From NCBI RefSeq assembly GCF_000143415.4, contig NW_003314326.1:434001-498000 (forward strand): a stretch of DNA of 64,000 nucleotides, written 5' to 3'. Positions 6,988-46,069 of this stretch are shown here, in pieces (the first letter of the stretch is position 1; the number at the start of each line of letters is the position of its first letter). The position numbers and the translations under genes were made by a program. Source of the stretch: Selaginella moellendorffii (Eukaryota; Plantae; Lycopodiophyta). The notes under the pieces were generated by a model, which was given only the letters and a program-made list of their open reading frames with translations, made no database searches and was not told where the DNA came from.

Positions 6988-7087
6988 NNNNNNNNNNNNN
7001 NNNNNNNNNNNNNNNNNNNNNNNNNNNNNNNNNNNNNNNNNNNNNNNNNNNNNNNNNNNNNNNNNNNNNNNNNNNNNNNNNNNNNNN
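6988..7087. other. Assembly gap (100 N)
   Basis: Run of N. Confidence 1.
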
Positions 7088-7142
7088 GTACACTCATTTC
7101 TTAGCAAGGGCATCAATATGAAGCATTTTTCTTCTGGGCCAA

Positions 7143-16463: not shown

Positions 16464-18329
16464 TCAAAAACAAGCGGTCTTACTTGCGGGCTCCGCAGAG
16501 ACACGCTCCACTTGAGAACTGTATGGCGCGATGTGGTGCGTCACGGAAATCACAGAACCGAGGAGGTCTTCAATCAGTTCATACCTACGAAGCAAACAAC
16601 GATCGTCATTCAGAACAAACATGAAACGAGCAAACATGAAAACTTACAGTCGGCAGCAGAGTCTATCGGTGAGCGCGGTGACACTGAGAACCTTAAACCT
16701 TACTCCGCTTATGTCTTGTTCCAGCACCTCTTCGGGCATCTCAATAAGCATCGACAGCCTCTCAACCTGTTCTTCAAACTGCTGCTGCTGGTCTTCGAAC
16801 AGCACCTGGTTCATTGCGTTCTGCTCCGGGGAGATGTCGTCCTTGAAGAGATCGTTGCCGAACATAAAGAATGCGAACGGATACGAGCACGAGACGGCAC
16901 GCCGGGCCTTGTAAAGCATCTGGAGCCCAGACTTGAGCCATGTGTAGTCCTTGACAATCAAGTCGCGTTGTTCCAACCTTTCAATCTTCTCCTGTACAAG
17001 TTGTTCTTGCTTCTCTTCGAACTTGAGAGAATCCATATGCGCTCTCCACAGTTTGTAATAATGAAGGTATCTCGACAGCGTGCGTTTTGCATCGGCTGCT
17101 CTTGTCTCGGCTTCCTCTTTGTAGCGACCACAACTATGCCCCACAATGTGCTCGTAGCTATGAGCAGCGCCGGTGGCAGCACCACATTTCCAGCTACACG
17201 AACAAGGAGAAAAGTTAGTTTCCATCTCCTGAAGGTGAAGAAACAATAAACACAACTTACCAGAAATGCTGGCCGCAGCGGCAAGTCATGAGGTTGCAAC
17301 CTTCGTTCTTCTCGACTGGCTTAGTGCATTTCGGGCATGATTTAGTGTGACTGGTGATCCAGTGATTCGTCTCGGAGTCGTCTTTACACTTGCGCTCCCA
17401 CAGCTCCCACAAGCTGCATGACAGCGGCGAGTGCGGCAGCTTCAAGCAGTTGAAGCAAAACTGGTGCGAGCAAAGGCACTCGATCTCCCAGTACGGCCCC
17501 CCCTCCACCTTGATGGCATTTCCGCAGTGTGGAACGCTCGGGCACCACTTGACTGCTGCATTGTCTTCGATGTAGGACTCGAGCAAGCACCTCTCATACC
17601 GGGCCAAAGCCTCGCTGTTCCTGGATGCTAAGACGGCACGAACCTTTTCCTCGTCACAAATCGTTGCACACTTGAAAGCCATGCACTTCAACTTCCGGCT
17701 CTCGCCCTCCATGATCTTGACGGTAAAGTTCTCGAGCCAGCCTGCCCTTCCGAGTTAGATCGAAGGAAAAGCAAAGAAAGAGAAAAGATAGCAAAGGAAG
17801 AACACTTACAATCGTTGCAAAAGGCATGGCCGCAATCCATTTGAGTGGCATCGGCCTGTGGAACATCGTCGAAACAAATGCCGCAAGTGACAGTGCTTGG
17901 CAGCGGCTGCAAGGCGGGCTGGTTTTCAGCCAAAGCTGGCAAACCAACCCTGCGAAAGACCGCATCTCTCCCAGCCTCAGCCATGTAGCTAAACAAAACC
18001 TCGACGTTCCATCGGTAGTGGATGAGAAGAGCCCTGGCGTGCTGGATTTTCACACCAAACATGTCCATCACTCTTTGCAGATCTTGTTGCTGCCACGGCA
18101 AAGATGCGATGAGGAGGCGCGCTGCAAAGAATGGATCCCTTACCTGAGCAAGCGCTAGCGATTCGGCGGTGATCACCTGCGTAACACGCAATCCCGTGAA
18201 TGAGGACAATCTTTTGGAGGCGCTTACCCTATGCGACGATCCGCGCAGCTCAGCGGGATCGTCATCGCCGCACTCGAGCTCGCTCTCCGCGTAGATCCCC
18301 GAATTGTCTTCGTCCTCGTCGCTCATCAT
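16464..18329 (-). CDS. ARI: ARIADNE-family RBR E3 ubiquitin ligase
   Basis: Acidic N-terminus; RING1 CGICFDD..CGHAFCNDC; IBR KWCPSVPHCGNAI..FCFNC; RING2 CPKCTKPVEKNEGCNLMTCRCGQHFC; Ariadne domain RYLHYYKLWRAHMDSLK. Last exon YELIEDLLG...TACF*. Confidence 0.95.
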
Positions 18330-18339
18330 GTTAGGCTAC

Positions 18340-19170
18340 TACTAAAGAACCCTAAATTTTGCCCCCCTTAAAAACCGTCCAGCGTGGCAGCGGCAATGGG
18401 TCTATTAATCGCGCCCAATGCATTGAAGAACTGCCTTTCGCCCTCCAAATCTCTTGATGACCCGAAGAAGCTCCACTCTCAGATCGCGATCCAGCACAGG
18501 GCATCCCCAATCCAGATGTTCTTGCGGTGCGGGGGAGTATTGACGAGGGCATCGATGATTTCCGCGTACGCGCGAGATGGGCTGCTGGAAGAGGCCAGGA
18601 TTTTGCTCGATGCGATGCCGGAGCATAGCTTTCAGTTCTGGACGAATGCTCCTTCCATATGCCCGTGTAGGGTATACCAAAGAAGCGAAAAACCATCTTC
18701 GATTGTATGAGAGAGAGGAACATCCATTCGTGGAATGTGATTCTAAGCGCATTTGAAAGATCTGAGATGGTCCGGGAAGCCAGTTCTTGTTTCCAGAAAA
18801 TTCCGGAGAGAAATCCGGTGTCCTGGGCTGTCATGCTTGCACTATTTGCCCTTCTTGGGCATTTACATGAACTTTTACGAGATACATGGTGGTCTGGTTA
18901 TTGCTTTTTTATGCGCATACTCAAAACATGGTTTCGTTGCAGAAATCACAGAAGTGTTTTAATCTATGCCGTAATGGCACTTGGCTTCCTGGAACAACTT
19001 TTGTTAGTAGATGCCCATAAAGGGCATCTTGAGAACGGGAAGAACATCTTCGCTTCGATGGAGAAGCACGATGTAGTATCGTGGACTGCACTGGCTTTCA
19101 AAAACATTGTCTCATGAAATGGCATGCTTTCTGCATTTGCCGAAGCCGGGCATATACGAGAGGCAGAAGA
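18340..19170 (+). pseudogene. PPR pseudogene, tandem partial duplicate of the 19614-21566 gene
   Basis: Near-identical peptides (KKLHSQIAIQHR, MISAYARDGLLEEAR, MRERNIHSW, AHKGHLE..KNIF) with deletions, frameshifts and stops. Confidence 0.92.
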
Positions 19171-19613
19171 GAAACAACACTCATTTCGTTTGCAAGTTTG
19201 TTCAATCCCACTGTTGCTTCTGCTTGAGTTTGTCTTGAATTGTATATCCATTAAAGAGAGGATCCAAACTCCCGGCTGATGCAAGCTCCATTAGCAAATC
19301 TAAAAGACTCAAGATACGAGTTGAAAACTCTCTCAAACCTTCCACCACAAGTATCTCCTGCTCGCCCCTATTGCCTCTTCTTCCCCAGCTTCTTCAGATC
19401 GACCAATCGTACCAATCCTCTCCAGCGCCATAATCAAGCTCCCAAGAAACCAAGCGCCAAGGTGGAAAATCGAATCCTCCCATCTCGAGCAAAACCAACA
19501 TTGCCATAATCCTGCCAAAAAAGAGAGAGAATCAACGGTAGCTAAAAACAATTGCAGCCACAGCATTTTCCGACTACTAAATTTTGCCCCCTCCAGCGTG
19601 GCAATGTAGGTGT

Positions 19614-21566
19614 ATGAATCGAGCCCAATGCATCAAAGAGCTCACAGGCTTCTCCCCCAAATCTCTCCATGATGCGAAGAAGCTCCACTCCCAAATCGCG
19701 ATCCAGCACAGGAGCGACGCCTACATCTCCAATTTGCTCATCCAGATGTTCCTGCGATGCGGGAGTATCGACGAGGCGAGAAGAGTGTTTGCAAGTTCCA
19801 CGGCGAGGGACGAGTTCTCTTGGGTATCGATGATCTCCGCGTACGCGCGAGATGGGCTGCTGGAGGAGGCCAGGAGTTTTCTCGATGCGATGCCGGAGCA
19901 CAGCCTCCAGTCCTGGACGATCATGCTGCTTGCATATGCCCGGGAAGGGCATACTGAAGAAACGAAAACCATCTTCGACTGCATGAGAGAAAGGAACATC
20001 CATTCGTGGACTGTGATGCTAAGCGCATTTGGAAGAGCTGAGCTGGTCCGGGAAGCCAGTTCTTGTTTCCAGAAAATGCCGGAGAGAAATCTGGTGTCCT
20101 GGACTGTCATGCTTGCGCTATTTGCCCGTGTTGGGCGTTTTCAAGAACTTCGACTCTTGTTCAATGAAATGCCGGAACGAGACATGGTGGTTTGGTCCGT
20201 TTTCTTGTCCGCGTACGCTAAACACGGTATCCTTTCAGAAACCACAAAAGTGTTCTATTCCATGCCGGAATGGAACTTGGCTTGCTGGACCAACTTGCTC
20301 TTGGTAAATGCCCATAAAGGGCATCTTGAGGACGCGAAGAACATCTTTGACTCGATGGAGGAGCACGATGTGGTGTCGTGGACTGCACTTCTTACTGCCT
20401 ATTCTCGTCACGGAGATGTTTTCTACGCTTGCAAAGTTTTTAATCTGATGGCTTTCAAGAACATTGTCTCATGGAATGCCATGCTCGCAGCATTTGCCGT
20501 GTCAGGGCATATACAAGAGGCGGAAGAAACTTTCAAAAAGATGCCGGAACGAGATTTGGTGTCGTGGATCACGCTGCTCGTCGCGTACTCCATCCGCGGA
20601 AGAGTTGACGAGGCTAGGAAAACTTTCAATAGCATGCCCAGATTGAATCTTGTAGCCTGGAATGCAATGCTCACGGCCTATGCTCACGGTGGATTCCTTG
20701 GCAAAGCGAGGGAGCTTTACAGATCCATGCCGGAGAAGAATCCGGTGTCGCACAGCGCAATGTTGGCCGCGGAAGCGCAGCTCGGAGATTTAAGACAAGC
20801 TCAAAACTTGTTTGATGCGATGAGAGATCGGACTCTCGCTTCGTGGACGTGCATGCTAACCGGATTTGCAAGGGAGGGGCATCTCGAAGAAGCCCAGCAA
20901 ATGTATGAGCTGATGGGACAGAGCAAAGATCTCATCGCCCAAAACGCGATGCTCTCCGCCTTTGCTCGCAACAAGGCGATCGGAAGCGCCGAGAGATTCT
21001 TCTGGGAAGGAATGGAGGAGCACGACTCGGTGTCTTGGACGATCATGGTCTCCGGCTACGCTCTCGCCGGTCGTCTCGATGTAGCGAAGAAGATGTTCGA
21101 TGGGATGATCGATCGAGACATGGTATCCAGGGACGCAATGCTTGCGGGATTTGCTCACGGCAGTCGCTCCAAGGAAACCATCGAGCTCTTCCACCGCGGG
21201 AGCTTAATGGATTCTCCAGACGACGTTGCTTTGGTCCTGGTTTTGCTTGCTTGCGGCCACTCCGGGGACGTGTTCTTGGCAAGGCAGTACTTTCGTAGCC
21301 TGGAAGTCGACTATAGTGTCAAGCCACTCAAGCAGCATTTTTCCTGCGTGATCGATCTCCTTGGTCGAGCCGGCTACCTGGAATTCGCAGAGAATCTCAT
21401 AGATTCTATGCCGTTCTTGCCTGAAGCATCGGACTGGACTAGCCTTCTCGGGTCGTGCCGATCGTATAGAGATCCCGAGCGAGGAGCACGAGTTATGCAA
21501 AAGCTTGTAGCTTGCAATGCCAGTCTCGGTTCTCCATATCAGCTGCTATCGTCCGCTCTTACGTGA
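19614..21566 (+). CDS. PLS-class pentatricopeptide repeat protein with E domain, no DYW; intronless, about 650 aa
   Basis: Tandem repeats of about 31 aa (MPERNLVSWTVML..AYA..G.LEEAR..F). E-domain region HFSCVIDLLGRAGYLEFAENLIDSMPFLPEASDWTSLLGSC. Ends SPYQLLSSALT*. Confidence 0.96.
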   Translation: MNRAQCIKELTGFSPKSLHDAKKLHSQIAIQHRSDAYISNLLIQMFLRCGSIDEARRVFASSTARDEFSWVSMISAYARDGLLEEARSFLDAMPEHSLQSWTIMLLAYAREGHTEETKTIFDCMRERNIHSWTVMLSAFGRAELVREASSCFQKMPERNLVSWTVMLALFARVGRFQELRLLFNEMPERDMVVWSVFLSAYAKHGILSETTKVFYSMPEWNLACWTNLLLVNAHKGHLEDAKNIFDSMEEHDVVSWTALLTAYSRHGDVFYACKVFNLMAFKNIVSWNAMLAAFAVSGHIQEAEETFKKMPERDLVSWITLLVAYSIRGRVDEARKTFNSMPRLNLVAWNAMLTAYAHGGFLGKARELYRSMPEKNPVSHSAMLAAEAQLGDLRQAQNLFDAMRDRTLASWTCMLTGFAREGHLEEAQQMYELMGQSKDLIAQNAMLSAFARNKAIGSAERFFWEGMEEHDSVSWTIMVSGYALAGRLDVAKKMFDGMIDRDMVSRDAMLAGFAHGSRSKETIELFHRGSLMDSPDDVALVLVLLACGHSGDVFLARQYFRSLEVDYSVKPLKQHFSCVIDLLGRAGYLEFAENLIDSMPFLPEASDWTSLLGSCRSYRDPERGARVMQKLVACNASLGSPYQLLSSALT

Positions 21567-21643
21567 ATAGTTTGGAGAGCATCAAAATCATACCTGTGTG
21601 ATAATGTACTGTTTATTCCCGAGTCCAATAAAAAATCGCAATT

Positions 21644-23331
21644 TCATATCTTCAACAGCGGCTTGCCAGCATAGCCTTCCTTCCAAGTTTCCTGGATCTG
21701 AATGGCGGTAGCATAAGGCTTCCCTCCCTACAAACATTCGCAAAGGTAGATTACAAGCGTTACAAAGAACTAACAAAAAGAAGTACCGGGGACTGGAAAA
21801 TAGCGGTTGTTATACGACAGTTGAGCTCTCCATCTGGAAAAGAATCGGTGCTTAGACACAAGCAAAGAAACTGAAAAAAAAAAAAACCAACCATAATGCT
21901 GCCACTTATCGAACTTTGCAAGCCAAGTGTCCTTTCCAATGTTCGTCACCCGGATTCGATCAACCCAGATCCAAAACCGCTTGTCCTTATGAAGGCCGTG
22001 GAGGGGACGAAGCATCTCGATTGCATTCGCAAGCTGGATATCAACTCCCCAAGCGCCAATTAAAGTAGAATCTGGAGCCTGAATCAAGGAGCACTCAACT
22101 TAAGAGGATTTCAGAGAAGAAAAAAAAGAACGAGTTTTTCTTACCACTGGAGCCTTGAGAATCTCAAAGACGTGGTCACTGCACTCCACCTCGCCCTTGA
22201 GCCACTTTTCACACAGAAGCTGGTGCAGAACAATCTCGCGAGCAATCGCCTGATGACCGTCTTTGTGACCCGCGACAAAATCGCCATCCATCTCCAAGTC
22301 TCGCGGCGAGACGCACGGATCGATGCCAAAGTGCTGCAATCCTTGGATGATACCCGACGCACACGTCTCAGTGGCTCGGAAAATCTTTTGATTGTCACGA
22401 GCGTTTTCATTGTACCAATTTATCAGCTCCTCCATAGCATTCCCTACCTGTGAAAGATGCAGCAGCTATCAGTAAGTCACAAGGGACAAAAAGGAAAGAA
22501 AAGAAAAAGCCAACCATTGAGCCATATACTCCAGGAACAGCAAAAAGCTCAGCGTCGTTTCCGGAATCGCCACAAACCATAGTTTGCAGTGGAGATTTTC
22601 CTTCGGCCTCGAACTTCTTTAGCAGATAGGACAATGCATGGCCTTTGCTTGCTCCAATGGGAAGAACATCCAAATCCTGGCCGCCACTGTGGATGAGTTT
22701 CACCTCCAACTGCATATGAACAGCGAGAGTGACAATGTAAAATAAGAAAAGGAGCACATACCCCACGAGCTTTCAATCGATCATCGAGGACTTTCATAAT
22801 CTCTGGTGCTTGACTCCTGTCCACTGAAAAACTCACTTTATGTGGTCTTTGCTCTGTAGCACTCTACAAGTTACAGAATAAAAACGAGAACTCGCAAGTT
22901 TTTCTCAATGAAAACGAACCTGGAAGGTGAGCTGGGGCATCTCAGAAGCTACTTCCATAACGATCGATCGGTCCCAGCCTTTGTCGAGCTCGTGCTCCCA
23001 GCCACTATCGGGAATCATGGAATCGCCATACATTATCTCCGTTCCGACCGAGAGAATTGTAATGCCCGGAGTGAGCAATGGCTTCTCTCGTCTCAACTCT
23101 TTGTAAAGGGTCGGAGACCTCCCAGTCGAGAAAACCAGCAAGGAATCGTGACTGAACTCGGCAGCCCACAATGCGTTGAAGCGGAGAAGGGACTTGTTCT
23201 CCGGGTCGTGATGATCCACCTGTGCAAAATCAAAACTTTTTGAGACCAAATGAAAGGTCGATCGATTTGCGTACCATGGTGTGGTCTAGATCGGAAACTA
23301 TCATCAGCCGCGGCGAGCTCGATAGATTCAT
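21644..23331 (-). CDS. SPP: Sucrose-phosphate phosphatase (HAD domain + S6PP C-terminal domain)
   Basis: Motifs [66 protein letters not shown] and [12 protein letters not shown]-terminal RFWIWVDRI and IQETWKEG. Stop at 21644. Confidence 0.95.
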
Positions 23332-23491
23332 TGTGCCTTTCCCAAGTGTTCCTCCCGAGTAACCTAAGTAAAAAAAAAAAAGACAAGAATATTCATGAAA
23401 AAGGGAGGACAAAAATGATATTTTTACCAAGCCATTTTGTCGCGTGTTCGTGATAGCCACTTGTCAAGTTGTCGCTTGAACCAGATTTTCG

Positions 23492-24974
23492 CTAGAGTTC
23501 TCTTGCTTTGTCGACGTCGTCTTCTACATTTCCATCCGAGTCTTCGTGTTCTGGATCGCGTTCTACCTCCGAGACCTCCTCTTCGCAGTCAGAAGCACTG
23601 TCTCGACGGTCAGAAGCAACGAGTTCCGTGTCCGAGTTCCCGTCGACTTCCTCGGCCTGGTCCGAGTCCGAGAGCTCCACCCGGTCCAATCCATCGGTTA
23701 TTTGGATGGCTGCTTCGCCGCCTTCTATCTCTAAAGCCTTTGTGAACTCCCCTGCTAGAGACTTCGTGCAGTAGTCCTTTTGTGCCAGGCCCGTCATAAA
23801 CTTAACCAGCAGTTTCTTGGCCTTCACGCAGCTCCTTCGCTTTGACTTTTGGATCTCCTCACTCTCTTTCTGTTGTTTAGACTGCCTCGAAAGATTCACT
23901 TTCATTTTAAACTCGCGTAGCAACCTCCGCAATTCCTGCCAAGTACATACGTTCATTTGTCCAGATTTTAATCGTGAATGAAGAACTTACCTCCCTGTCA
24001 TACCCGTATGGCAGCGTATAGATTAGCCTTGTAACACTCAATTCGTTGTCCATGAGTCCATTCACCCATGTTTCAGAGGTGGTCTTCACGTATTTATCCC
24101 TCTGAAGAAAGTGGAATAAAGAAAAGTAAGATAAACGAAGAAAACCTAGCCGCAGTCGCATACATGAGAAGATTGATCTGCGAAGAATTGTTGGAGGGAA
24201 ACCGTTTTTCCAAGCCTCACACAATATATCACATACTCGAGCACGTCCAGCCGACAGTGACGAACCATTCCCTCTGTGTGTTTTCCAGTTAGAAGGAAAC
24301 GAGAAGAAAAAAAGGCATCGAGACACCGACCGATAAAACTGTATTGCCGCCTCTTCGCTTCCTTCACACCAGTGATCTCCATTTTCTACGAGAAAGACAA
24401 AACCAAAATCACTGTCTCGATCGATCGTATAAAAACGAAAATTTCTTTCTCGGACACTTGTTTACCTGGACAATCAGTGTGGCTTCCAAGACCTCTGGTG
24501 GTAGCGAAGCCCATCTGAAGAACAAAGAAAGAAAGAACTGCGAGTAAGGAAACTTTCGCGAAGAACCAAAAAAAAAAAGAAGAACTAGAAAGAAAGAAGA
24601 ACTGCGAGTGACGACCCAGGAAAAAAGAAGTAGATGACTTACTGGATCACATTTTTAATCTGGCCGGGTGCCAAAGTCGCCATGAGCCTGACGAGCGAGA
24701 GACCCTTGTCACTGCGTCGCTTGAGAGCGTTCCTGGTAAGCTTGTCGCCCTCTAGCGCTGGACTGGGATCCTCCTGACCTTGGAGCACGCTCTTGATCGC
24801 TGGGGTGAGAGGAATCGGTGTGATCGGCTTCTTTGTCTTTGGACGACGCACCTTCAATCCCCTCGCAAACACCAGCATTGCGGCATTCTCGTCGCATCCA
24901 GGCAGCAGCAGCGATGGCGGTGACGATGCGCACTTGCGATGGATCGATCGGCAACGCGATCGAAGTAAAAACAT
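23492..24974 (-). CDS. Organelle-targeted YjgA/DarP (DUF615) ribosome maturation family protein with acidic tail, 6 exons
   Basis: Spliced product: MFLLRSRCRSIHRKCASS (presequence-like)...LTRNALKRRS..LMATLAPGQIKNVIQWASLPPEVLEATLIVQ..EAKRRQYSFI..WVNGLMD..YDREELRRLLRE..KAKKLLVKFM. This follows the YjgA pattern SKSQLKR..RRRQLQYIG..WRDRL..DRQQLRQLIR..KA.RELF. Confidence 0.78.
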
Positions 24975-24994
24975 ATCTTTCTGCCCTAAAACTC

Positions 24995-25002
24995 TAGGGT
25001 TT
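24995..25002 (-). promoter_or_regulatory. Telo-box (AAACCCTA) upstream of the YjgA-like gene, near a TATA-like TTTTATATAAG
   Basis: TAGGGTTT at 24995-25002, 20 bp upstream of the ATG. Telo-boxes are typical of plant translation-machinery genes. Confidence 0.5.
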
Positions 25003-25062
25003 TTGAAAATTCCTTTAGAACCCTTATATAAAAGCTCCAGCACAAAGTGGACTTTCACTCGT

Positions 25063-26868
25063 CTATTTAGTGGTAATCATACGAAAAAAACGTTGCTTTC
25101 TTTTAAATCTTCGTCTGATGGATGCGAGCTTGGAATGTGGTGTATAGCTTTCTAAAGCACAGGTTCGTTCCTTGATCGCCACCGAGTCCAGTGGCTGTGA
25201 CAGCTTGAGAATGGTGTCGAAAACCTGCAGCGTTCCAAAGTGCTTGGGCACGCCGTGCCTGAACAGAAACTTGCGCTTGGCCTCGGGCTCCAGCGGGAAA
25301 TGCTTGGCGTACATGACAACGGCGGTGGAGAGAGCATGCCCCCATGCATACGAGGGCGTAGCCACCACAGCATGCCTCAGCTGCTGGAGCGCCTTCCACA
25401 GCTTCTCATCCTGCGCCACAGCTCCTTCCGGCAATGGCTCGTAATCCTCGGGACGCATATGGACTAGCTTCTCGTATGCAGTTGGGCCTTCTTTCCTACA
25501 AAAAGCAATGCAATGCAAGACATTGATCTTCTAAGAGAAGACACAACATACGTACCACATATGGCTTAGTGTGTTGTTTCGCAACACAGTCTCTACTACA
25601 GACGGCCCGCGCTCCACCAGGAAACCACCATTGAGAGCCTGAACACGACATTAATAGCTGTTTCTATAGCTGCAGTGGAGAGAAGTATAAAAGCCTACCT
25701 CTTCTTCGGCCGATGCAGCTCCTCGGGTACACAGCTCACCGTCTAGAAACGAGCAGGAAGCAAGTTATAGTCAGCGAGAAGCGGGCGGATCTAACTTACA
25801 CGTCAAGCTGTAGTCGTAGTAGATCGGGAGGTCGTAGCGGCCGAGCCAGAGACGCGCGTGAGCGCTGGCATTGACAATCGTGTAGTAGTGCGGGAGTGTT
25901 GAGTGTGGCGGCCGGTGCAACAGCAGTGAGCGTAGGAGCTGGTTGGACCGGATCCCCCGCAGCAGCAGCCTAGCCTCGCTCACACGTAATGGAGAAGTTG
26001 CAACTTCAACGCATGGGTATGCTGCTGGTGGCACTCTGGGCAAGGCGTTCCTGTCACCTTCGAGTTTTGAGTAGTACTCTTCTACCGTGTCTCGTAGCTC
26101 TGTGTGAGTCCGCAAGTTCCATCCCAGGTTCTTCACTGGCAAGTAGAAAAAGTAGTCACTCTCCGTCAACTTGCAAACAAGGTCCAGGATGTTGGGAACA
26201 TCATCAAGTCCGACGGCTAGAGTCACTGCTGATCCCTTCCCTGTTACTAAGTTACAAATAAATACGTTAGCACAGCACTCGGGTCAAAACTTACGTACCG
26301 CCACCATGCAGCGGGCTGCCTCCTCCTTCCTGCCATCCTGGAAAAACAAGAATCATATAAGAAGAAAGAAATCAAAACCATGGTTACCAAAGTAGAGGGG
26401 CTCCAGGGGGGGTCGCACAGGCTCGAGGGGGCGGTCCTCCATGACAAGTTCTCCTGGTCGATGAGGATCAGCAGCATCCACGCCGATGCGCACGCCTTTG
26501 CTGCCACAAAAGCGCTCCCAAAACATCTGCAGCGGCTTCCCAACCTCGTCATCTCCATCGCAAACACCAAAGCCGTGCCCCAGCAGCTCCCCCGCAAACT
26601 CCACCACAAGATCACACGCAACCTGAGAAGCCGGCGGAAGGGATCTTCGGAACCCTTCACGCTCCTCGGGCCCGAGGCTTCCCAGGTAGAGGATTGAAAC
26701 GAAGGAGAAGAGCGTGTGGTCGTTGGCAGGCGGATAGAAGACGTATCCCACCTCTGCGATGTATTCACAGAGCGCTCGCGCCTCCAGCACGACGTCGGCG
26801 GCGGCTGGCTCAGTATCAAGCCTTGCAGCGAGGATCTGCGCGAGCTTCAACAAACTGCTCGACTCCAT
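25063..26868 (-). CDS. Hypothetical protein, about 500 aa, 6 exons, no recognised domain
   Basis: ORF segments MESSSLLKL..., GWQEGGGSPLHGG, KGSAVTLAVG...YYDYSLT, YGELCTRGAASAEEE, ALNGGFLVERG..SHMW and KEGPTAYEK...ITTK* join in frame through short GT-AG introns. Confidence 0.75.
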
Positions 26869-27172
26869 ACTAATATTAACCCTAAAGGGAAGATGGGATA
26901 GGAGGCTATAGTTTATAGTGAGAGAGCAAAGAGAATACACTCTCTCCTCCACACATCATTGAGGAGATAGACATGGGAAATCTACATCTTAGCTTGCCCG
27001 AGGTTCTTCTAACTCTCAAAGACTTACCCTTGCGAGGATCCATGAATTTCATCGTCGAGGTTCTCGAGCAAGAAGAACAAGGCTGCAAGATCACCGACGT
27101 GTACCCGGTTTCTTAGGACAAGACTGTCAACTATAAAATTTCTCTAGAACCCTAAAAATGTAGGGGATTTCC

Positions 27173-28597
27173 ATGCCTGGAACAAGGATCACGCTCACCA
27201 GGAACAGCCGGCAGACGGTAAGATCGGCAGTAGTTCTCGATCTGGATGCCAGCAATCCAGAAGAATCGATCAGATCGATCCTCGCGGCCGCCGAGAAGAA
27301 GCTCCGCATCAAGAAACCCCAGCGCCTCTTCCTCGCTGCCGATGGCACAGAGATCGGGCCAGCGACGCTGTCCAGAGTCGCAAACGACGCGGTTGTGCTC
27401 GTATCGGCAGGGGAGGGATTCGTCGGTGGAGGAAATCTTTCCTCCAAGGATGGTGATCAAGCTCCAGCGGCCGCAGTCTCAGTGGTCCACTCCTCGGAGA
27501 GATTTCTCGAGGATTTCGTGGAGCGGCTAGCAATCAATCAGCTAGAACAGGTCGCGAGGCTTCCGGGAGTGGTCATGCCCGACTTGCATCCATCGGATCA
27601 CTATCCCATTGGGGCGGCCATCGAGTCGGAGGAATGCATCTATCCAGTGCTCATCGGTGGCGACGTTGGCTGTGGCATGGCCTTGTTCCAGACCACTCTC
27701 TCCAGCTCCACTCGTCCAAAGAGAATTTGCGACAAGCTCCAGGGGATCGAGGGACGCTGGAAGGATGGAAGCGTCTCCGAGTGGCTAGCCAAGAACGGTA
27801 TCTCCGGGAGCTCCAGCACTCCTTTCGACGAGAGCCTGGGAACTATAGGTGGTGGCAATCACTTTGCCGAGATCCAGCAAGTGGAACGAGTTGAGGATCC
27901 GGAGAGCTTCTCGGCGCTGGGATTGCACGAAGACAAGCTTGTACTGCTCGTTCACAGCGGCTCCCGGGGACTTGGAAAGCACATCGCTCACTCGCAGCCC
28001 GTCCAGCTCCGCGAGAACACGGCAGAGTTTGATGCGTACATGCAGCAGCACAACTACGCTTGCAACTGGGCTCGAACCAACAGGGACTTGATCGCTCACC
28101 GGATCATGGCGTGCTTGAGCAGCGATCCCGACGCTAGCGCGAGCAAGGTGCTGGATATCTGGCACAACAACGTGACCAACAAGGAGATAGATTCGAGATC
28201 GGTGTGGCTGCACAGGAAAGGGGCTGCGCCGAGTGATCAAGGGGCAGTGGTCATTCCGGGGTCGAGGGGATCGTTCTCCTACTTGGTGATGCCGGTTGGC
28301 GACCAGCGAGAGAACTCTTTCTCGCTCGCTCACGGTGCCGGGCGGAGCTTGACGAGGGGAGTGGCGCTGTCCAGGATGAAGAACAAGGCCTCGACCGTGA
28401 ACGCTGCTGCCGCGGCGCTCCAGGAGACGCGATTGGGAGGCCGGGTGATTTGCGAGGATGTGAACTTGCTCTTCGAGGAGGCCCCGGAAGCGTACAAGGA
28501 TGTGGATGTTGTTGTGGGAGAGCTCGTTGGCTGCGGGATCATCAAAGTCGTGGCTGTTTACCGTCCGGTGGTAACTTACAAGAAGAGAAGCGAGTAG
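27173..28597 (+). CDS. rtcB: RtcB-family RNA ligase, RtcB2 (PrfH-coupled)-like, with an N-terminal KHA/doublecortin-like domain; intronless, 474 aa
   Basis: Motifs MPDLHP, GGDVGCGM, LGTIGGGNHFAEIQ, LLVHSGSRGLG, DIWHN, WLHRKGAAPSDQGAVVIPGSRG, SLAHGAGR, LGGRVICED..LFEEAPEAYKD and RPVVTYK. The canonical RtcB metal ligands and the guanylated His are present. Confidence 0.95.
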   Translation: MPGTRITLTRNSRQTVRSAVVLDLDASNPEESIRSILAAAEKKLRIKKPQRLFLAADGTEIGPATLSRVANDAVVLVSAGEGFVGGGNLSSKDGDQAPAAAVSVVHSSERFLEDFVERLAINQLEQVARLPGVVMPDLHPSDHYPIGAAIESEECIYPVLIGGDVGCGMALFQTTLSSSTRPKRICDKLQGIEGRWKDGSVSEWLAKNGISGSSSTPFDESLGTIGGGNHFAEIQQVERVEDPESFSALGLHEDKLVLLVHSGSRGLGKHIAHSQPVQLRENTAEFDAYMQQHNYACNWARTNRDLIAHRIMACLSSDPDASASKVLDIWHNNVTNKEIDSRSVWLHRKGAAPSDQGAVVIPGSRGSFSYLVMPVGDQRENSFSLAHGAGRSLTRGVALSRMKNKASTVNAAAAALQETRLGGRVICEDVNLLFEEAPEAYKDVDVVVGELVGCGIIKVVAVYRPVVTYKKRSE

Positions 28598-28779
28598 AAC
28601 AAAGCTCATTGAAACTTCTGTGGCTTCTCGATCTCTAGCACGGTCGATGATCTTGGTGATTTCTCTACGTTCTTTCACCGGTTCTATCCTTTGGAGGTAA
28701 ATCTTACAGGAACATGATCCGGCCCTGACGAAAGGATAAAAACACAAGATCACGGAGTATCCACGATGAGAAGAAAGTA

Positions 28780-29225
28780 GAAAAGTAAATGTAAGAAAAC
28801 CCAGTCACAGTCACATGCATGAGAAGATTGATCTGTGAAGAACTGTTCGTTTTTCCAAGCCTCACATAATATATCACACGTCCAGTCGACAATGACGAAC
28901 CATTCCCTCTGTGTGTTTTCAAGTTAGAAAAAAACGAGAGAGAAAAAGCCATAGAAACCAACCGATCAAATTGTATTGCGCTCCACTTTCTACACGAAAG
29001 ATAGAAGCCAAGTGAACGATCACATGGAAACGAAAATCTCTTTCTCGTTTACCTGGACAATCAGTGTGGCTTCCAAGACTTCTGGTGGTGAAGCCCATGT
29101 AGAAAGAAAGAAAACTGCGAGTGAGGAAACATTTGCGAAGAACCAAGAAAAAAGAACTAAAAAGAAAGAACTGCGAGTGAGGAAACTTTCGCGAAGAACC
29201 AATAAAACAAGAACTGCGAGTGAGG
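28780..29225 (-). pseudogene. Decayed duplicate of exons 2-4 of the YjgA-like gene (direct repeat of about 24120-24610)
   Basis: Retains WAS-PPEVLEATLIVQ, GAAGATTGATCTG..CGTTTTTCCAAGCCTCAC and the AAGAACTGCGAGT intron repeats, with deletions. Confidence 0.9.
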
Positions 29226-29359
29226 ACATGAGGGTCTATCCAGGAATATCCCATACGTCATGAAGGCTGTTGACAATGCTGTAGAGGACTGCACGAAATG
29301 TTGTTTGAGATCTGCTCAATATTGGCCCATAGCTATTAAGATTCAAGCACTTATATGTA

Positions 29360-30135
29360 AGAGAACTATTTACCTCGTTCAACTCTTTCTCTTCAATGCT
29401 CCCGATTTATGGCAGAGTTTCCTGGTACTTTCAATGCCTCGTGTTTCTCCTCATCACTTAGGATTGGAGATGGAGTTTCCTATCAAGAACTCTTAAGACT
29501 ATGAGCAATTTAAAAGAAAAACTTACCTTAAGTAGCTTTTAGTGCCTCGAGCTTGTCTTTGTCCTCACCGGTCAGGAATTGTGGCAGAGTTTCCTGATGA
29601 AAACTCTAAGTCTCTAGGAGCACAAAAAACAAAAAAAAAAAATTCTTGCCTTCAGTGCCTTGTCTTTCTTCTCAGAAGGATTGAAGGTGGAATTTCCTAT
29701 AGAGAACTCTAAGACTAAGAGCACAAAAAAGAAAAAAACTTACCTCGTGCCTAGTTGTTTTGAGTGCTTTTTCCTCACCCGTCCTTATGGCAAAGTTTCC
29801 TGATGAGAACTCTAAGTCTTTAAAAACACACACAAAAAAAGGAACTTACCTTCAGTGCCTCGTCTTTCTCCTCAACACTTGGGATTGGAGGTGGAATTTT
29901 CTATAGAGAACTATAAGACTAAGAGCAGAAAAAGAAAACTTACCTCGTGCGGAGTCCAATCCCAAGCATTGAGGAGAAAAAGGAGGCACTGAAAGCAGCT
30001 GGGCACGAGGTATTTTGTTTCTTTTTCTGTGCTTGACTTTCAACAGGAAACTCTGCCATAATGCCCAACTGGTGAGGAGAAACACTGGATCCTATCGAGA
30101 ACTCTAAGACCTAAGAGCACAAAAGAAAAACTTAT
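29360..30135 (-). repeat. Decayed tandem array of duplicated exon-intron units, with an internal inversion at about 29955-30090
   Basis: Repeated ...TTAGAGTTCTC(T/A)..AG acceptors, exons of about 50-65 nt (e.g. KIPPPIPSVEEKDEALK) and AG|GTAAG donors. One block reads on the opposite strand. Confidence 0.7.
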
Positions 30136-30441
30136 TGCTAGCTTGTTAACCTTGTTGACAATTCCTTTCTGTGCCTCCTCACTTAGAGCTGCCAAGAAGA
30201 TCATTAATTTCCGTTGTGTAAATAGTTAGGTGTTAATTGTAATACATCGTGTGATTCTGGACTGTGGTATTGTTGCTGGAAACAAGAATGGTAAATGTTT
30301 GCAAACTATTCCGAGAATAATCCATGGCCTGTTTAAGGCCAGAACGCCTTAAACCCTAGGTTGGCCTACCTTGCGGTTTGTTAAATAATAGTATTAATTC
30401 TGTGTTGTAAGCTATTCGAGAAGTTAGGTTATCTTGGCGCA

Positions 30442-32780
30442 ATGCAGGAGTTCTGGGATGCAAAGGCAGTTGTGGAAGCAGTTTTGAAGATGGGTGATTG
30501 CGGTTTGTCTCGTAGAGAGAAGCTCAGCTGGGATAGCGCAAGGGTTAAGGTCCTGGATTTGTTTGACAACGAGACAGCTGGTACCATCATTGACGCATTA
30601 CTCCAGCTTACAGAGTCGACCCGATTGGACTATTTCCTCCCTGCCGATGCTGCGACCAAATCTGCTCTACTGTCACTCGGTACGTCAATTTGTGTTGATC
30701 CGGCATTACTTAGCGCTTGTTCTGCAGTTAGCAGGAAAAGGCGCAGAGTAGATCCATTTGGGGAGGTGAAGGCTCAAGCTTCTGCGCTGGCATTGTCTTT
30801 GGAAATGTCTTATCAAGAGATGACAGAAGAAAAGCTCGGGAGCATCGATACCCGGATAGATCTGCTGGCGCCGGACATTCTTACAGAAGACGCGACCTCA
30901 TTTTCATACATGGGACGGAAGACTACGGTGGACATACTGAAGTTTTTCCAAGCTGTGAAGAAGGGTCCGAGCGTGTACAGCACGAACCCGAATCTTGCCA
31001 TTCGGTTCATAACTGGGACCCCTGGGGCTGGAAAAACGTACAGCGTTGCAGCCGCAGCTGGTTACTTATATGTCAGCGAACGAAGAAAAGCTACCGGCGC
31101 TGCTGCTGTTGCGTATATCAACGCCCGAGTGTTCATGGAAGATCCATCTTACAATTTATGGCGTGCGCTCATTCTAGCCTATGCTCGTGATGAAGCGGCT
31201 CTCAACGCGCTGAAATGTGTCGACTACGAAAGGCCGGACTGTCTGCTCCAATTTCTCAAAGAGCGAAAGAAGCTGCAAAAGGTTTACCTTTTATTCGACG
31301 ATGGCAACTCGCTACATGACAAAGATATATTCTCCGGCCAGATCAGATTTGCTGCTCGATCTTTTGTCGAGTCTCTTGCTCAGGTGTGCGTCGTCGTCTT
31401 CTGTGCATCCATAGAAAGCAAGCTGCGCAAAGAGCTTATAAAGGACGCTGCTCCGCCTCAACTTATCGTTTGCGGAGGGTATACGGTAAGTCCCTGTTTC
31501 GGAAAACTGGTTATTCACCGAGCTGTTTTGTTAGAGAAAAGAACTAGTTGCCTGCATTGGCATGTACCTCGAAACTACGGACCAGCGTTTGATTGATGAA
31601 GAAATTGCTTATATTCTCCAAAGAACTGGTTCTGTGCCGCGACTGATTTATCATCACTATTTCGGCGAGGACGGTGAACTGGATAGTGCTATCAGTCGGT
31701 TCAAGGATGAGATTGCGGACTTCATCCTGAACCGGAGCAGCTGGGAGGTTAGTGAACTTGCCAGAGCACTACGGGGGGAGCAGGTTGCTCGCTTGACGGT
31801 TGCGATGGATACCCGTGCCTTCTACAGGGGTCGAGATGGAAGAGGGAAGTGTTTAACTGGTGAACTTCGTTCGTATGCATTTGGCTTAATTTCGGAGAAG
31901 GTGAAGGCGGAAAGTTTGGAGGAAGGGAAGGTTGAGGTTCGGAGGTGGCTCGGAATGATCATGAAGGACAACAACCTGGTGCGCATTGGCTGGAATGTGG
32001 AGGAGGCTACCATCTTGACGCTCAAGCTGCTGACCCCTTGTATAAGAGTGGACAACAATGACCTGAGCGAGAAAATTTTGATCAAGCCTGCAGGAGTGCG
32101 GACAGTCAAGGGGAAGTTTGGGATAGATGAGCTGAAAGATGTGGGCCTGTCACCTACACTTTTCCTTCCGAACTTCAACCACATCGGAGCCGATGTTTTC
32201 TACTCCGATGAGGAGTGGTTAATCGTCTTCCAGATTACAGTTGCCAACAATCCCGAGAAGCATCATAAGAGAACTCTAGAGGTTGCGGACGAGTTGTTTA
32301 CAGTGACACAAAGAAGGACGATGCTAGTTTGGGTGGTGTACACTCCTACAGAGACAGATACTTGGGTGGTTAAGGATTCGGAACACCCTCATGTTACTCA
32401 AGTCTTCATGTCTTTCGGTCAGCTGTCCAGCCATCTCAAGGATATCGATTCCGCACTTCGGGTGCTCAAGAGCAATCTCTACTCAAAGAAGCCGGCCGAG
32501 GACGTCTGTCCAGAGTACAAGTGTGCTGAAACCTGCAGGGATGATAAGTGGATAAGCTGTACTTTCTGTAACGTCTGGTTTCACTGGCTCTGCACCACTG
32601 CTACTGAGGAAACTTGGGAGTTGTGGTTGTGTGATAACTGCCGTGCTCCTGGTAAGTATCAAACATGTCTCTTGCTTATTTACACGCCTTCTGACGCCTC
32701 ATTGTGCAGATGATGATCCCGATGTGGAATTGCCTCCACCAGTTCCGGATGCTGGTCGAAGGCGTGGAATCTCCTTCTAG
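30442..32780 (+). CDS. Crinkler/RHS-type P-loop NTPase + PD-(D/E)xK-like endonuclease + C-terminal PHD finger, about 743 aa, 3 exons
   Basis: Exons 30442-31485, 31535-32651 and 32710-32780 splice in frame. Walker A GTPGAGKT; Walker B LLFDD; GGYTRKE and TGSVPRL; nuclease-like GWNVEE..PNFNHIGAD..VFQITV..HH; PHD C..C..CxxC..HxxC..CxxC (WISCTFCNVWFHWLC..WLCDNC). Confidence 0.8.
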
Positions 32781-33639
32781 TCGTAGCTTCTTCCTGCTGT
32801 CCAAATGAGTTTAAATGTGCAAATCGGGGTTTGATTTGGCTACATCAAACGCTACGTCATTTCTTTAAATAATATCACCAGTAAAATAACAAAGGTGTCT
32901 TATAAGTTATGGTCGCATTCTCTTCCTTGGTATGAAGAACTGCGGTATGAATTCACATCTAATAGAGCAGGGGGTGGCCTGACAAATGAATTGCTGGCCG
33001 GCACTGTAGTGCCAAGTGATTCAAAATATGGTCATTTTTTGGATCGGTGCAAAAGCATGGTTGAATTTTATAGCTATTGGCAGAAATGGAGGCATCGACG
33101 TTTTCTCCTTCAAGGTCACAGCTCACAACCACAAGCTCCTCGTTCACGTTGCTCGACCTCTCCATGGGAGCATAGCCCTGGAGATAGTACCTCCATGAAA
33201 CAAAGAATATTCTATGCGTAAACTTGGATATTCTCTGCATGAAAATGTATTTCCCATGTGAAATTGAATATTTCCTGGGTGAAACATGTGAAATCGAATA
33301 TTCCCATTTAATCATTTTTAAGGATATTCCCCAGAATCTAATGGCCATTATGTGCCCTTACATGACCATCCATAACCATTCAACTCAAATTATTTATAAT
33401 TATAAGCTTTGAATTGTTTGCCCGATTTATAATTCTAGTTGATTAAAGCTTTTGGGCATTGTTGCAACTTAGCAAAGGCTGAGGAGCTCAAATAGAGTGA
33501 TTAACTTTATAGTTTTCAACCATGGATGCTCATTTTAGAGCAGTATATGAAATTTCATGGAATTTCATTATTTCATGGGAATTATTTGGGATTGCAAAAT
33601 ACTTGTATACTTAGTTCTTGCTTCTTCTTTTTTGTAAAA

Positions 33640-43892: not shown

Positions 43893-46069
43893 ATGCGCTC
43901 GTGGGGAGCTGTGGTGCGGCGTGGGAAGCGCCAGCGCGAGTATGTTACGGAGAGCCAAGCAAGGGAGGCGGTGAAGAAGATCCTGGCACTGGAGGAAGAC
44001 GATCTGATTGATTCAGGTAAGCTGACGTCGCTGCCATACCCCGGAATGAGACGCTCCCCTTCTTCCATTCGGCCACCGGTGGATTTCAATTTTGTGGGCA
44101 AGGACACGTTGGATGGCTTGTTGAGGGAGTGGCATTTGGGATACACCGAGCTGGTTGTTTACGGGCCCAAGGGCATCGGGAAATCGTCTGAGTTTCGAGC
44201 GCTTGCCTGCCTCTTATACCAAAAGCTCAACACTGTGAAAGCCAAGCAAGAGTTGAGGGCTCGGGTGGTATTCCTGTGGGGGATCACGCTGCTGCAAGAT
44301 ATAGTTGCGGCCTTAAAGGATGCGCTCTTGTTTTCCTATCTGGTGGACAGTGTCGAGAATGTGGATGGCTGGCAAGATGTTGAAGCTGTTATCAAGGCCA
44401 TCAAGTCTACGCAAGATATCATCTCCTTCATCAGCAGTCGCAAGGGTGGCTCCAAGCCGGAGATTTTTCATTTCCTGGTGGACGGTGGCGAGAAGCTAGA
44501 CCCCGCGGACTTTCTCGGAAAGCCGGTGTTGAACTCCGAGCACCTTTCTGCAGTGGGTCGCCATTTACAGCAGGTTTTGGCAACAGGCGAAAGGGTCTGG
44601 TGGTGCACAAGCTCAGGAGCCAGCCAGGCAATCCAGGAGCTACCGTTTTACACTTACGGAAATGAAGCCTTTAACAACGTACTTTTTTCTTTTTCTGATT
44701 TTATTTTTATTTTTATTTTATTTTATTTGGCTGCATGCAGGATGAGTACTCCATCTATGCTTCAGACTGTATACTGGGGAAAATTCCTGCTCGTCGTGCA
44801 AGCATCTACTTCTACACCGGACTTGTGCCACTTTTCCTCGACGTACTATGCGATTCGTGCAACTCCGTGATATGTGAAACAAAGCTACAGAGCAGTTTTC
44901 GGGATCGCAAGTTATGGGAGCGCAGCGGCTTAGCTGCAGCCTTTCTGCTGGATGGCGACGACGAAGCGGATGCTTCAGCGCTCGAGGAAGAAGACGAGTA
45001 CTGGGACGCGGTGATTAAGACGTTTTGTGAACATACCGAGCTAAAAGCTGTTTCGAGAAAGGCAGATCGAATAGTGGTGCAAGAGGACTACTTGACCGAC
45101 GAGTCCATGGCAAGTCTCGACCCAACTTACGTCCTCAACGCTGGAAAGGGCCAATACTGCTCGCCTTACATAAAAACAGTCTACGTGAAGACCGTGCGCT
45201 CCAAAGAAGAAGTTGCCAAGCCCCATGCCAACGGAGTGTGGTTGGCATATGCAAGCCGCAAGCTGTCAGATACAAGTGAAATCGACTGGTTGTGCCTGGG
45301 CCATCTCTGCGAGGACGTTCTAGCCAGCGTGATTCCAAAGAAAGGATTGGTCCTCGGGCAGCTTAAAGTCTGCGGAGCTATCTGTGTCGAAACGTTTAAC
45401 AGCATCCCGTCGAGAACCATCAAGTCACTGGTACAGCTGAAGCCAAATTCAGGGTATTATTACAAGCCTTGGGAGCGTGCCTTCCCGGACGTGGATGGCG
45501 TGATTGTGTGGGTGGACGAGAAGGGCGAGCTGCATGTTGTAGCGCTGCAGTTCACCGTCAACATTGACAGGCATTTACATTCTGCGGACCAGTTCATGAG
45601 CTTGGCATCCCTGAAGCGCTGGTTCCCAGACATTGAAGAGTATGTGATGGACACGGCATCGACGTTGCAGCCGCCAGTGTCGCCATCGACGGTGAAGCTG
45701 CACTTCGCATTCATTGGCTGTTCTTCACGGCCTGGCGTTTGCAGTAGCGAGAAGAAGTCCACACTCAAGAAGCGGAGGCGTACGGTGATCGGAACGCCTG
45801 CCTACATGCTGCACGTTCAACCATTTGATACTGACTCGATTCCAGGTTTGAGTGCGGATGATTACAAAGTGTTGGTAGACATTACTCAGCACAGGACGTG
45901 GACAGGAAAGAGCAACTACACACAAGTCTGTGATGACGGGTTTGGCCTCCTCGCTCTCTCCAGAAAAGAGCTAGAGAAAATGGCCAAGGAGGATTTTGGA
46001 ATCCCTGACCCGGGTCATAACGTCTACAAAAACAAGGCACTGCTTATCAATGCGATGCTCTCAACGTGA
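43893..46069 (+). CDS. Crinkler/RHS-type P-loop NTPase + PD-(D/E)xK-like endonuclease with NLS and a putative HEH/Rho-N-like C-terminus, about 704 aa, 2 exons
   Basis: Exons 43893-44678 and 44741-46069 join at a phase-0 intron. Walker A GPKGIGKS; Walker B FLVDG; YTGLVPL; LGHLCED..KPWERAFPDVDG..LQFTVN..H; KKRRR; C-terminus LSRKELEKMAKEDFGI...KNKALLINAML. Confidence 0.8.

Follow-up and report, generated by a model that had tools for sequence, protein, structure and literature searches.

The bacterial RNA ligase RtcB2 has been described as part of the rtcB2-prfH module, as in Escherichia coli ATCC 25922 (PMC9304027; PMC9223846; PMC13166195). The E. coli enzyme mends 30S ribosomal subunits cleaved between A1493 and G1494 and leaves cut tRNA unrepaired (PMC9304027); in a further report RtcB2 alone is described as repairing colicin-E3-cut 30S and 70S in vitro, and its overexpression as rescuing E. 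coli (PMC13166195). RtcB2s of eukaryotes were noted "in fungi and plants" by Tian et al. (2022; PMC9304027), who predicted repair of the 40S subunit and remarked on the missing PrfH and toxin; the accessible text of that paper gives them one paragraph, without domain architecture, phylogeny, a named plant or expression data. Reviews state that RTCB has been lost from land plants and from major fungal phyla (PMC13247085; PMC12699882). The gene described here lies at positions 27173-28597 of a 64,000-nucleotide stretch of DNA (the window; positions 434,001 to 498,000 of contig NW_003314326.1) from the lycophyte Selaginella moellendorffii, and is evidently one of the set noted by Tian et al. It is a transcribed nuclear gene for a two-domain protein, in which an RtcB2-type ligase is fused to an N-terminal domain predicted to have a beta-grasp fold, and it was most likely acquired from a fungus or a close fungal relative. 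An earlier reading of the window, made from its letters alone (the original prediction), had proposed an acquired rRNA/tRNA repair activity, possibly against microbial ribotoxins, and the prediction of 40S repair without PrfH amounts to the same hypothesis; this idea is less new than was assumed there, because fungal and plant RtcB2s had been remarked upon in 2022 (PMC9304027), and the novelty is therefore moderate. What is new here is that the eukaryotic RtcB2s carry a fused beta-grasp domain and have a single origin, and that the plant copy has a fungal affinity; the alleles of the plant gene are likewise worked out here. A literature search found no paper on RtcB in Selaginella, nor any other paper on eukaryotic RtcB2 or its N-terminal domain.

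The Selaginella gene differs from the bacterial module in being monocistronic and nuclear, with no prfH in the window. The two share the RtcB subfamily, the catalytic residues, and the motifs PDLHP, HRKGAAPSD and EEAPxAYK. The features of the gene are as follows.

27173..28597, + strand: complete, intronless coding sequence of the beta-grasp-RtcB2 protein (open reading frame, Pfam and NCBIfam matches, joint-free RNA contigs)
27173..27430, + strand: N-terminal domain, residues 1-86, with a predicted beta-grasp fold like that of CIDE-N and doublecortin (DCX) domains (alignment, hidden Markov model (HMM), AF2 model)
27431..27484, + strand: low-confidence linker, residues about 87-104 (GGGNLSSKDGDQAPAAA); in both models the predicted local distance difference test score (pLDDT) of residues 86-96 is under 50
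27485..28594, + strand: RtcB2 catalytic domain, residues about 105-474 (HMMER alignment to Pyrococcus horikoshii RtcB, 4dwr)
27662, 27671, 27860, 27953 and 28163, + strand: predicted metal ligands D164, C167, H230, H261 and H331, respectively (4dwr alignment)
28331, + strand: predicted guanylylation histidine H387 (4dwr alignment)

The open reading frame (ORF) comprises 474 codons and a stop, begins with ATG and has zero internal stops in the ORF listing; RNA contigs cross it without joints, and the single-exon, 474-residue ORF of the original prediction is thereby borne out. Every motif named there was placed by script: PDLHP at residues 136-140, GGDVGC at 162-167, GGGNH at 226-230, VHSGSR at 260-265 and HN at 331-332, and further along HRKGAAPSDQGAVVIPGSRG at 347-366, AHGAGR at 386-391, RVICED at 424-429 and EEAPEAYK at 435-442. 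The columns of D164, C167, H230, H261, H331 and H387 are invariant or nearly so across 40 eukaryotic family members; the corresponding residues in P. horikoshii RtcB are D95, C98, H203, H234, H329 and H404.

Membership of the RtcB superfamily is indicated by a score of 233.1 bits against a cut-off of 27 for Pfam PF01139, and the call of the RtcB2 subfamily made in the original prediction also stood. NCBIfam has two models of the PrfH-coupled subfamily, both of them bacterial, and the protein lies above the cut-off of both: TIGR03073 ('release_rtcB') gives 356.9 bits against a cut-off of 271.8, and NF007153 is passed marginally. The RtcB2 models match at E 1e-107 to 1e-122, human RTCB at E 1e-19. 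Identity to bacterial RtcB2s is 47-51% across the catalytic domain, several of these matches being named 'release factor H-coupled', as against 20-28% to RtcB/RTCB proteins of solved structure (archaeal, Thermus and human; phmmer E 2e-33 to 2e-19); the closest bacterial relatives are prfH-linked RtcB2, not RtcB1. The full-length AF2 model (pLDDT 88.5) has the RtcB fold, with a Foldseek match to the P. horikoshii RtcB-guanosine monophosphate (GMP) structure 4dwq_A at E 7.7e-28 and a template modelling (TM) score of 0.65. These scores and identities assign the gene product to the RtcB2 (PrfH-coupled) type and not to the canonical metazoan/archaeal tRNA ligase (HSPC117; 4dwq, 7p3b, 8odo), with which it shares the fold and would be expected to share the chemistry; it is not an orthologue of RTCB, nor a retained copy of it. 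The statement of the reviews holds for the canonical tRNA ligase, which the Selaginella gene is not. As a counter-example to a total loss of RtcB in land plants the locus is clean: it is linked and expressed, and it places a gene of the RtcB2 class in a vascular plant.

Trl1/RNL is the ligase for tRNA and bZIP60 splicing in plants, and joins 2',3'-cyclic-phosphate and 5'-OH ends (PMC13247085). It is found in plants and fungi, its fold is unrelated and its three-step chemistry is ATP-dependent, and beside it RtcB2 would be an additional, not a housekeeping, ligase.

The Selaginella protein differs from bacterial RtcB2s, which at about 375 residues cover only its residues from about 105 onward, in the extra 86-residue predicted beta-grasp domain and the linker, the length of which differs between homologues. 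The conserved pattern MPxxRxTL..N..Q...AKxKLRxKK..R.F...G.E...ND...VSxGExFVG starts at Met1 in plant, fungal and protist proteins alike. An HMM of this domain matches the window protein at E 2.1e-30 and has about 100 holders among 263 fetched proteins, none of them bacterial-type. The AF2 model of the domain (pLDDT 85) has the order beta-beta-alpha-beta-beta, and its best superpositions are on CIDE-N domains: DREP3 (7v6e) with Z 10.8 and a root-mean-square deviation (rmsd) of 1.6 Å over 74 residues, and FSP27 (4mac) with Z 10.8. Overall, CIDE-N superpositions gave an rmsd of 1.6-2.1 Å over 74-78 residues (Foldseek E 4e-4), about 2 Z above doublecortin (Z 8.6) and about 3 Z above generic ubiquitin-like domains (Z 7-8). 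The likeness to the CIDE-N/CAD group (DFF40/45, DREP, FSP27) and to doublecortin is thus one of modelled fold, the sequence of residues 1-86 lying below the Pfam threshold for CIDE-N (PF02017; E 0.068, 13.7 bits against a cut-off of 23.5). On the model, then, this is a CIDE-N/doublecortin-like beta-grasp domain, eukaryote-specific and newly described here. The hallmark of CIDE-N domains is homotypic, head-to-tail self-association; a pair prediction with two copies of residues 1-100 for association of this type scored 0.01, which gives no verdict either way. A homologue search for the domain in other architectures, made with residues 1-90, returned only itself and was too insensitive for a 90-residue domain. 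ESM-Atlas features for the domain (KHA 0.79, CIDE-N 0.76) were set aside as below the level that counts. Some homologues are longer. P0124 (arrestin-N) and P0128 (histone deacetylase) have unrelated N-terminal parts, and P0134, P0143 and P0163 have no additional Pfam domain; all of them look like merged models or insertions and give no functional clue. A conserved domain that begins at Met1 leaves no space for a transit or targeting peptide, so that an organellar presequence is unlikely and a location in the cytosol or nucleus is to be expected.

Because residues 1-86 are absent from bacterial RtcB2s, the best full-length matches are not bacterial: they are proteins of early-diverging fungi and of Nuclearia, with 42-48% identity over 100% of the query. 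Among fungi, holders of the fusion were found in Chytridiomycota, Mortierellomycota, Basidiobolus, Calcarisporiella, Basidiomycota (Tilletia, Phenoliferia) and Ascomycota (Pleosporales, Discina); outside fungi, in Nuclearia, the amoebozoan Arcella, the euglenid Ploeotia, the kinetoplastid Apiculatamorpha, the labyrinthulid Aplanochytrium and the bdelloid rotifer Didymodactylos. The family therefore spans Holomycota, Amoebozoa, Euglenozoa and stramenopiles. At four fungal loci the gene lies among ordinary nuclear genes and has introns in three of the four, and no neighbour family is shared between them. A single-sequence search and a profile search were made of a database of 5.8 billion proteins which includes the NCBI, UniRef and EukProt plant proteomes, and neither listed another member of the Viridiplantae among its best 120 matches.

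In a FastTree tree of 151 rows and a quick IQ-TREE tree of 89 rows, the holders of the N-terminal domain fall together opposite the bacterial RtcB2s, and on their side Selaginella stands with fungal rows around it. A more careful tree (IQ-TREE, LG+C20+F+G4 with posterior mean site frequencies (PMSF), 64 rows, rooted on ten bacterial RtcB2s) supports the eukaryotic family at 91/97 (ultrafast bootstrap / SH-aLRT), the grouping of fungi, Nuclearia and Selaginella at 100/96, and that of fungi and Selaginella to the exclusion of Nuclearia at 98/96. These trees point to a single origin of the eukaryotic RtcB2s, and they make the membership of the plant gene in the eukaryotic fusion family, and its affinity with Holomycota, secure. 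Within that clade the tree does not resolve the plant branch, whose nearest rows are Quaeritorhiza, Calcarisporiella and Synchytrium, and the gene may lie either inside the fungi or beside them. Of the members P0140 (the rotifer Didymodactylos carnosus), P0141 (Arcella) and P0325 (Aplanochytrium), the rotifer sequence groups with protist sequences and not with fungi; it is probably a further transfer between eukaryotes, or else a contaminant of the rotifer assembly.

Two copies of the gene are present in the assembly, one in the window on a scaffold of 1,132,267 bp and another on the 981,669-bp scaffold GL377637.1 (the locus L001, 21 kb). The 90% cluster of the protein includes XP_002986164.2, annotated as 'uncharacterized protein LOC9639927 [Selaginella moellendorffii]', of 478 residues. 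The L001 copy is flanked by genes for an Ariadne-type RBR E3 ligase, a 516-residue protein and sucrose-phosphate phosphatase and by a 371-residue gene model, with a 759-residue gene downstream. The two scaffolds are collinear with 96-98% identity (blastn) over about 16 kb, window positions 17143-33170, which is what is to be expected of two haplotypes in the S. moellendorffii assembly. In the window, two plant genes upstream serve as points of reference.

17257-18834, - strand: Ariadne gene, the same gene as in the L001 flank
19584-21566, + strand: single-exon pentatricopeptide repeat (PPR) gene of 660 codons (PF01535, 308 bits; eight PPR repeats pass individually)

The presence of the same plant neighbours on both collinear haplotype scaffolds makes a contaminant or chimera very unlikely. 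The RtcB2 gene is a genuine nuclear gene of S. moellendorffii, linked to plant genes, and the land-plant host named in the original prediction is borne out.

The gene is also transcribed. At least 16 public runs, from 8 studies, contain at least half of its sampled 31-mers, and contigs of four runs from four studies were mapped onto window positions 24000-29900; such contigs give no expression levels, but they cover the gene in all four studies, and so supply the RNA evidence for expression that the original prediction had proposed as a check. In all four runs the contigs of the neighbouring minus-strand gene at 24000-24983 show four or five introns of 57-128 nt with CT..AC joints (GT..AG on the minus strand), so that these runs are indeed RNA. 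Those of RtcB2 have no joint at all; its mRNA is therefore unspliced, and the leader is very short. Two features describe the transcript.

27174..28900, + strand: transcribed region in RNA contigs, with 5' starts at 27174-27219 and 3' ends at 28741, 28861, 28892 and 28900
27132..27138, + strand: TATAAAA, candidate core promoter 35 nt upstream of the ATG, from reading of the sequence

The TATAAAA is a candidate for the core promoter, and would imply such a very short 5' leader. Across the four runs no contig covers 24985-27151, except for one 60-nt piece, or 28925-29121; the stretch just before the gene, 26955-27151, is without any contig. The intron-rich neighbours described in the original prediction were found in the case of the minus-strand gene, but not in that of the PPR gene, which is a single ORF.

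The copies on the two scaffolds are full-length alleles, of 474 codons in the window and 478 in the other haplotype, and the difference is due to one small deletion, which was seen both in the protein alignment with XP_002986164.2 and in the DNA comparison with L001.

27574..27575, + strand: site of a 12-nt in-frame deletion in the window allele; the other allele has AAGGCGGTGGGA (= KAVG), directly before MPDLHP

As all fungal and bacterial homologues have four residues at this site, the window allele is the derived, deleted form; the full ORF and the motifs justify the word 'intact' used in the original prediction, with the caveat that a conserved segment is shortened relative to the other haplotype. 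Transcripts of both alleles were seen: run X2 gave a contig with the 12 nt, whereas runs X1 and X8 gave contigs that lack them. Single-nucleotide polymorphisms (SNPs) across the four runs occur in varying combinations of the differences between the two haplotypes, and such recombined combinations are as expected of a segregating plant locus. Confidence of the AF2 model falls to a pLDDT of 55 at residues 131-140, around the deletion, which lies beside MPDLHP and the entry to the modelled active site; the activity of the window allele may be weaker than that of the 478-residue allele. In 38 other family members 84 columns are conserved to at least 90%; the window allele keeps 81 of these and the other allele 82, a degree of conservation which points to constraint on the gene over the long term.

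The gene most likely originated by horizontal transfer, the donor being a fungus or close fungal relative, since the affinity with Holomycota and the absence of other plants from the searches make transfer from a fungus-like eukaryote the most economical one. It is also the best reading of the horizontal acquisition for which the original prediction had made the gene a candidate; of the donors listed there (bacteria, fungi or protists), the N-terminal domain and the grouping with fungi and Nuclearia favour a fungus-like eukaryote, and a direct bacterial origin is disfavoured. Several points weigh against this history, or against the function proposed below, and they are given here and in the next paragraph with the accounts on which they bear. 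The bootstrap of the careful tree stopped short of convergence (correlation 0.985), and in approximately unbiased (AU) tests a tree in which all fungal and Nuclearia rows form one group that excludes Selaginella is no more than 0.7-3.8 log-likelihood units worse (p 0.51 with 89 rows, 0.41 with 64 rows). Many family members are metagenomic or Logan proteins, so that the donor group is known roughly; other lycophyte genomes lay outside the direct search; and the patchy distribution of the family across eukaryotic supergroups leaves room for ancient presence and many losses. Vertical inheritance, in which a gene of early eukaryotes was lost nearly everywhere and Selaginella is the sole sampled green plant to keep it, would fit both the occurrence of the family in several supergroups and the failure of the AU tests to reject Selaginella as sister to the fungal and Nuclearia sequences. 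It is nevertheless quite improbable: dozens of independent losses in Archaeplastida would be required, and a plant orthologue should outscore the fungal proteins, which are at most 48% identical, whereas none does so and no other member of the Viridiplantae stands among the best 120 matches of either search, despite the plant proteomes in the database. The gene tree also conflicts with the relationships of the organisms, placing the plant with fungi (100/96), Arcella with euglenozoans and the rotifer with protists, a conflict which points to repeated transfer between eukaryotes. A direct transfer from a bacterium, of an RtcB2 taken out of a prfH operon independently of the fungal genes, would be consistent with the lack of introns, with an identity of 47-51% in the catalytic domain, which is as high as to fungi, and with the bacterial character of TIGR03073 and NF007153, the latter of which is passed by a margin of just 1.5 bits (408.5 against a cut-off of 407). 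This too is opposed by the N-terminal domain of about 86 residues, which runs in register from Met1 with the fungal and protist proteins (MPxxRxTL...KLRxKK...VSxGExFVG) and is found in no bacterial homologue, by the support of 91/97 for the eukaryotic clade against bacteria, and by the AU test, which rejects the placement of Selaginella outside all other eukaryotic members (27 log-likelihood units worse, p 0.028); it is considered very improbable.

That the sequence derives from a fungal or endophyte contaminant, or from a chimera of assembly, might be suspected from its fungal relatives and from the first JGI gene models, which were partial (356 and 360 residues). Such an origin is hardly credible for a gene that has one and the same position, with the same plant neighbours, on scaffolds of 1.13 and 0.98 Mb with an allelic divergence of 1-4%, found in runs of 8 studies, and with haplotype SNPs recombined between runs; moreover, the nearest fungal protein is 48% identical, so that no sequenced contaminant matches. 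The allelic comparison bears on another possibility, that the gene was once useful and is now a decaying relic drifting to loss of function, at least in the window allele. Besides the indel the alleles differ at 12 codons, nine of them nonsynonymous and three synonymous, which corresponds to a pN/pS of 0.95, as against 0.46 for the PPR neighbour between the same haplotypes (18 synonymous and 29 nonsynonymous codons; pS 0.041 against 0.009 in RtcB2). On these 12 substitutions an omega of 0.2 or less is rejected (p 0.012) and one of 0.5 is not, a hint of relaxed constraint; and the loss of KAVG, with a glycine at least 90% conserved in the family, beside MPDLHP and in a segment of low model confidence, fits a recent relaxation of this kind. 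Against decay, both alleles retain full ORFs, nearly all of the conserved columns and all of the catalytic residues, and both are transcribed in several studies; 12 substitutions are too few to reject an omega of about 0.5, and polymorphism within a species usually inflates pN/pS. A relic is accordingly judged improbable.

As to PrfH, in the bacterial relative from Electrothrix (P0088) a gene with an RF-1 domain, prfH, follows immediately after rtcB2. A tblastn search with the Electrothrix PrfH gave only chance matches (E of at least 1.8) in the 64-kb window, in agreement with the original prediction, and in the 21-kb allelic locus L001; nor was an RF-1/PrfH gene found next to the fungal homologues at four loci, so that genomic coupling to prfH was found at none of these places. 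In Electrothrix aestuarii (CP159373.1, locus L002, 5143-7706) rtcB2 overlaps prfH by one base (5143), and downstream of prfH lie a gene for a 639-residue protein without a Pfam family and one for an AAA ATPase, possibly forming an extended repair module.

It is proposed that the eukaryotic fusion descends once from a bacterial PrfH-coupled RtcB2, that the Selaginella lineage would have obtained the fusion gene horizontally from a fungus or close fungal relative, and that it has presumably been under long-term purifying selection since its acquisition. Since no catalytic residue is missing, the protein is expected to catalyse the RtcB reaction, using guanosine triphosphate (GTP) and Mn2+: His387 would be guanylylated, GMP would be passed to an RNA 3'-phosphate or 2',3'-cyclic phosphate end and so activate it, and attack by a 5'-OH end would seal the break. 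The reaction would take place in the cytosol or nucleus, and its target, unlike that of the bacterial enzyme, would have to be the 80S ribosome, the 40S subunit or another cytosolic RNA. The likeliest task would be the re-ligation of RNAs of translation cut by endonucleases, by analogy with bacterial RtcB2 the small-subunit rRNA, with tRNA as the alternative. The protein would work without PrfH, and docking or assembly may fall to the predicted beta-grasp domain, the obvious candidate for such a part. Function independent of PrfH is plausible by analogy, for the repair of cut 30S and 70S by bacterial RtcB2 alone makes it credible; a point against is that no eukaryotic ribotoxin cutting the 18S decoding centre is known (PMC9304027). 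Taken as a whole, the reading of the locus as a transcribed two-domain RtcB2 gene, acquired from a fungus or close relative and encoding a PrfH-independent repair ligase, is thought probable.

It is tempting to go further and suggest that a cytosolic, PrfH-independent enzyme of ribosome repair exists in fungi and several protist groups, and through transfer also in Selaginella, and that in it the CIDE-N-like domain replaces PrfH in targeting the ligase to damaged 40S/80S or to cut tRNA. This is regarded as rather doubtful; if it were true, it would imply a yet-unknown class of ribotoxin that cuts eukaryotic small-subunit rRNA, and a plant that has borrowed a fungal antidote. For plant biology alone, the addition of another fungus-like gene to those of an early-diverging vascular plant is of modest interest. 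Eukaryotic RtcB2s appear to have passed from one eukaryote to another, in this case probably out of a fungus into a lycophyte, and two natural alleles (474 and 478 residues) and a separable N-terminal domain offer a handle on the question, raised by Tian et al., of PrfH-free damage and repair of eukaryotic ribosomes.

The surroundings of the gene include a direct repeat of about 0.45 kb.

24119..24614, strand not assigned: upstream copy of the direct repeat (repeat families D3-D6; blastn against 28771-29183, E 9e-86)
28771..29183, strand not assigned: downstream copy of the direct repeat, starting 174 nt past the RtcB2 stop codon

The blocks of this repeat are 82-96% identical, and only these two copies occur within the window. 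The upstream copy lies over exonic and intronic parts of the expressed gene on the minus strand, and the downstream copy contains the 3' end of the RtcB2 mRNA, so that the pair brackets the RtcB2 gene together with 2.5 kb of upstream DNA. The same arrangement is present in the other haplotype, where L001 11613-12018 matches window positions 24128-24611. The repeat may be either an insertion scar or a later local duplication. The bracketed DNA includes minus-strand ORFs at 25063-26952, in the stretch of about 2.2 kb between the upstream repeat and RtcB2; the other haplotype has here the 371-residue model, at L001 8022-9406, which corresponds to window positions about 25150-26560 (minus strand). 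Neither the ORFs nor the model have a Pfam family or a usable ESM-Atlas match, recognition is low, and RNA coverage in the four runs is almost nil. The model was therefore rejected as probably not a real gene, and there is thus no evidence for a second foreign gene arriving alongside RtcB2.

Between the RtcB2 block and the next gene lie about five tandem copies of a unit of about 100 nt at 29413-29938 (families D1 and D2; 61-89% identity) and inverted repeats at 29441-29602 / 30038-30085. Beyond them, pairs of overlapping long ORFs without a Pfam family occur on the plus strand at 30442-32713 (384 and 383 residues) and again at 43893-46069 (325 and 444 residues), the former corresponding to the 759-residue gene model of the other haplotype. 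Both pairs had been labelled 'NTPase-nuclease' genes in other notes of the earlier reading; as they sit outside the repeat-bracketed block, co-transfer with RtcB2 is not suggested. Base composition was also considered as a sign of recent transfer, and was dropped because the GC content at third codon positions (GC3) of RtcB2, 0.70, is not distinctive beside the 0.61 of the PPR gene.

For the minus-strand gene at 24000-24983, no gene is called at the matching L001 positions (about 6870-7850). Its contigs extend below 24000 toward the sucrose-phosphate phosphatase gene, of which it may represent unannotated 5' exons, and in run X8 it shows the alternative joints 24501/24631 and 24501/24643. Elsewhere in the window, a fragment of a long terminal repeat (LTR) retrotransposon encoding reverse transcriptase and RNase H lies at 1168-2211 on the plus strand (RT_RNaseH_2, E 6.5e-27), and the last 14 kb (50001-64000) have a sustained, strongly positive GC skew on the plus strand, of 0.16-0.29 per 2-kb bin.

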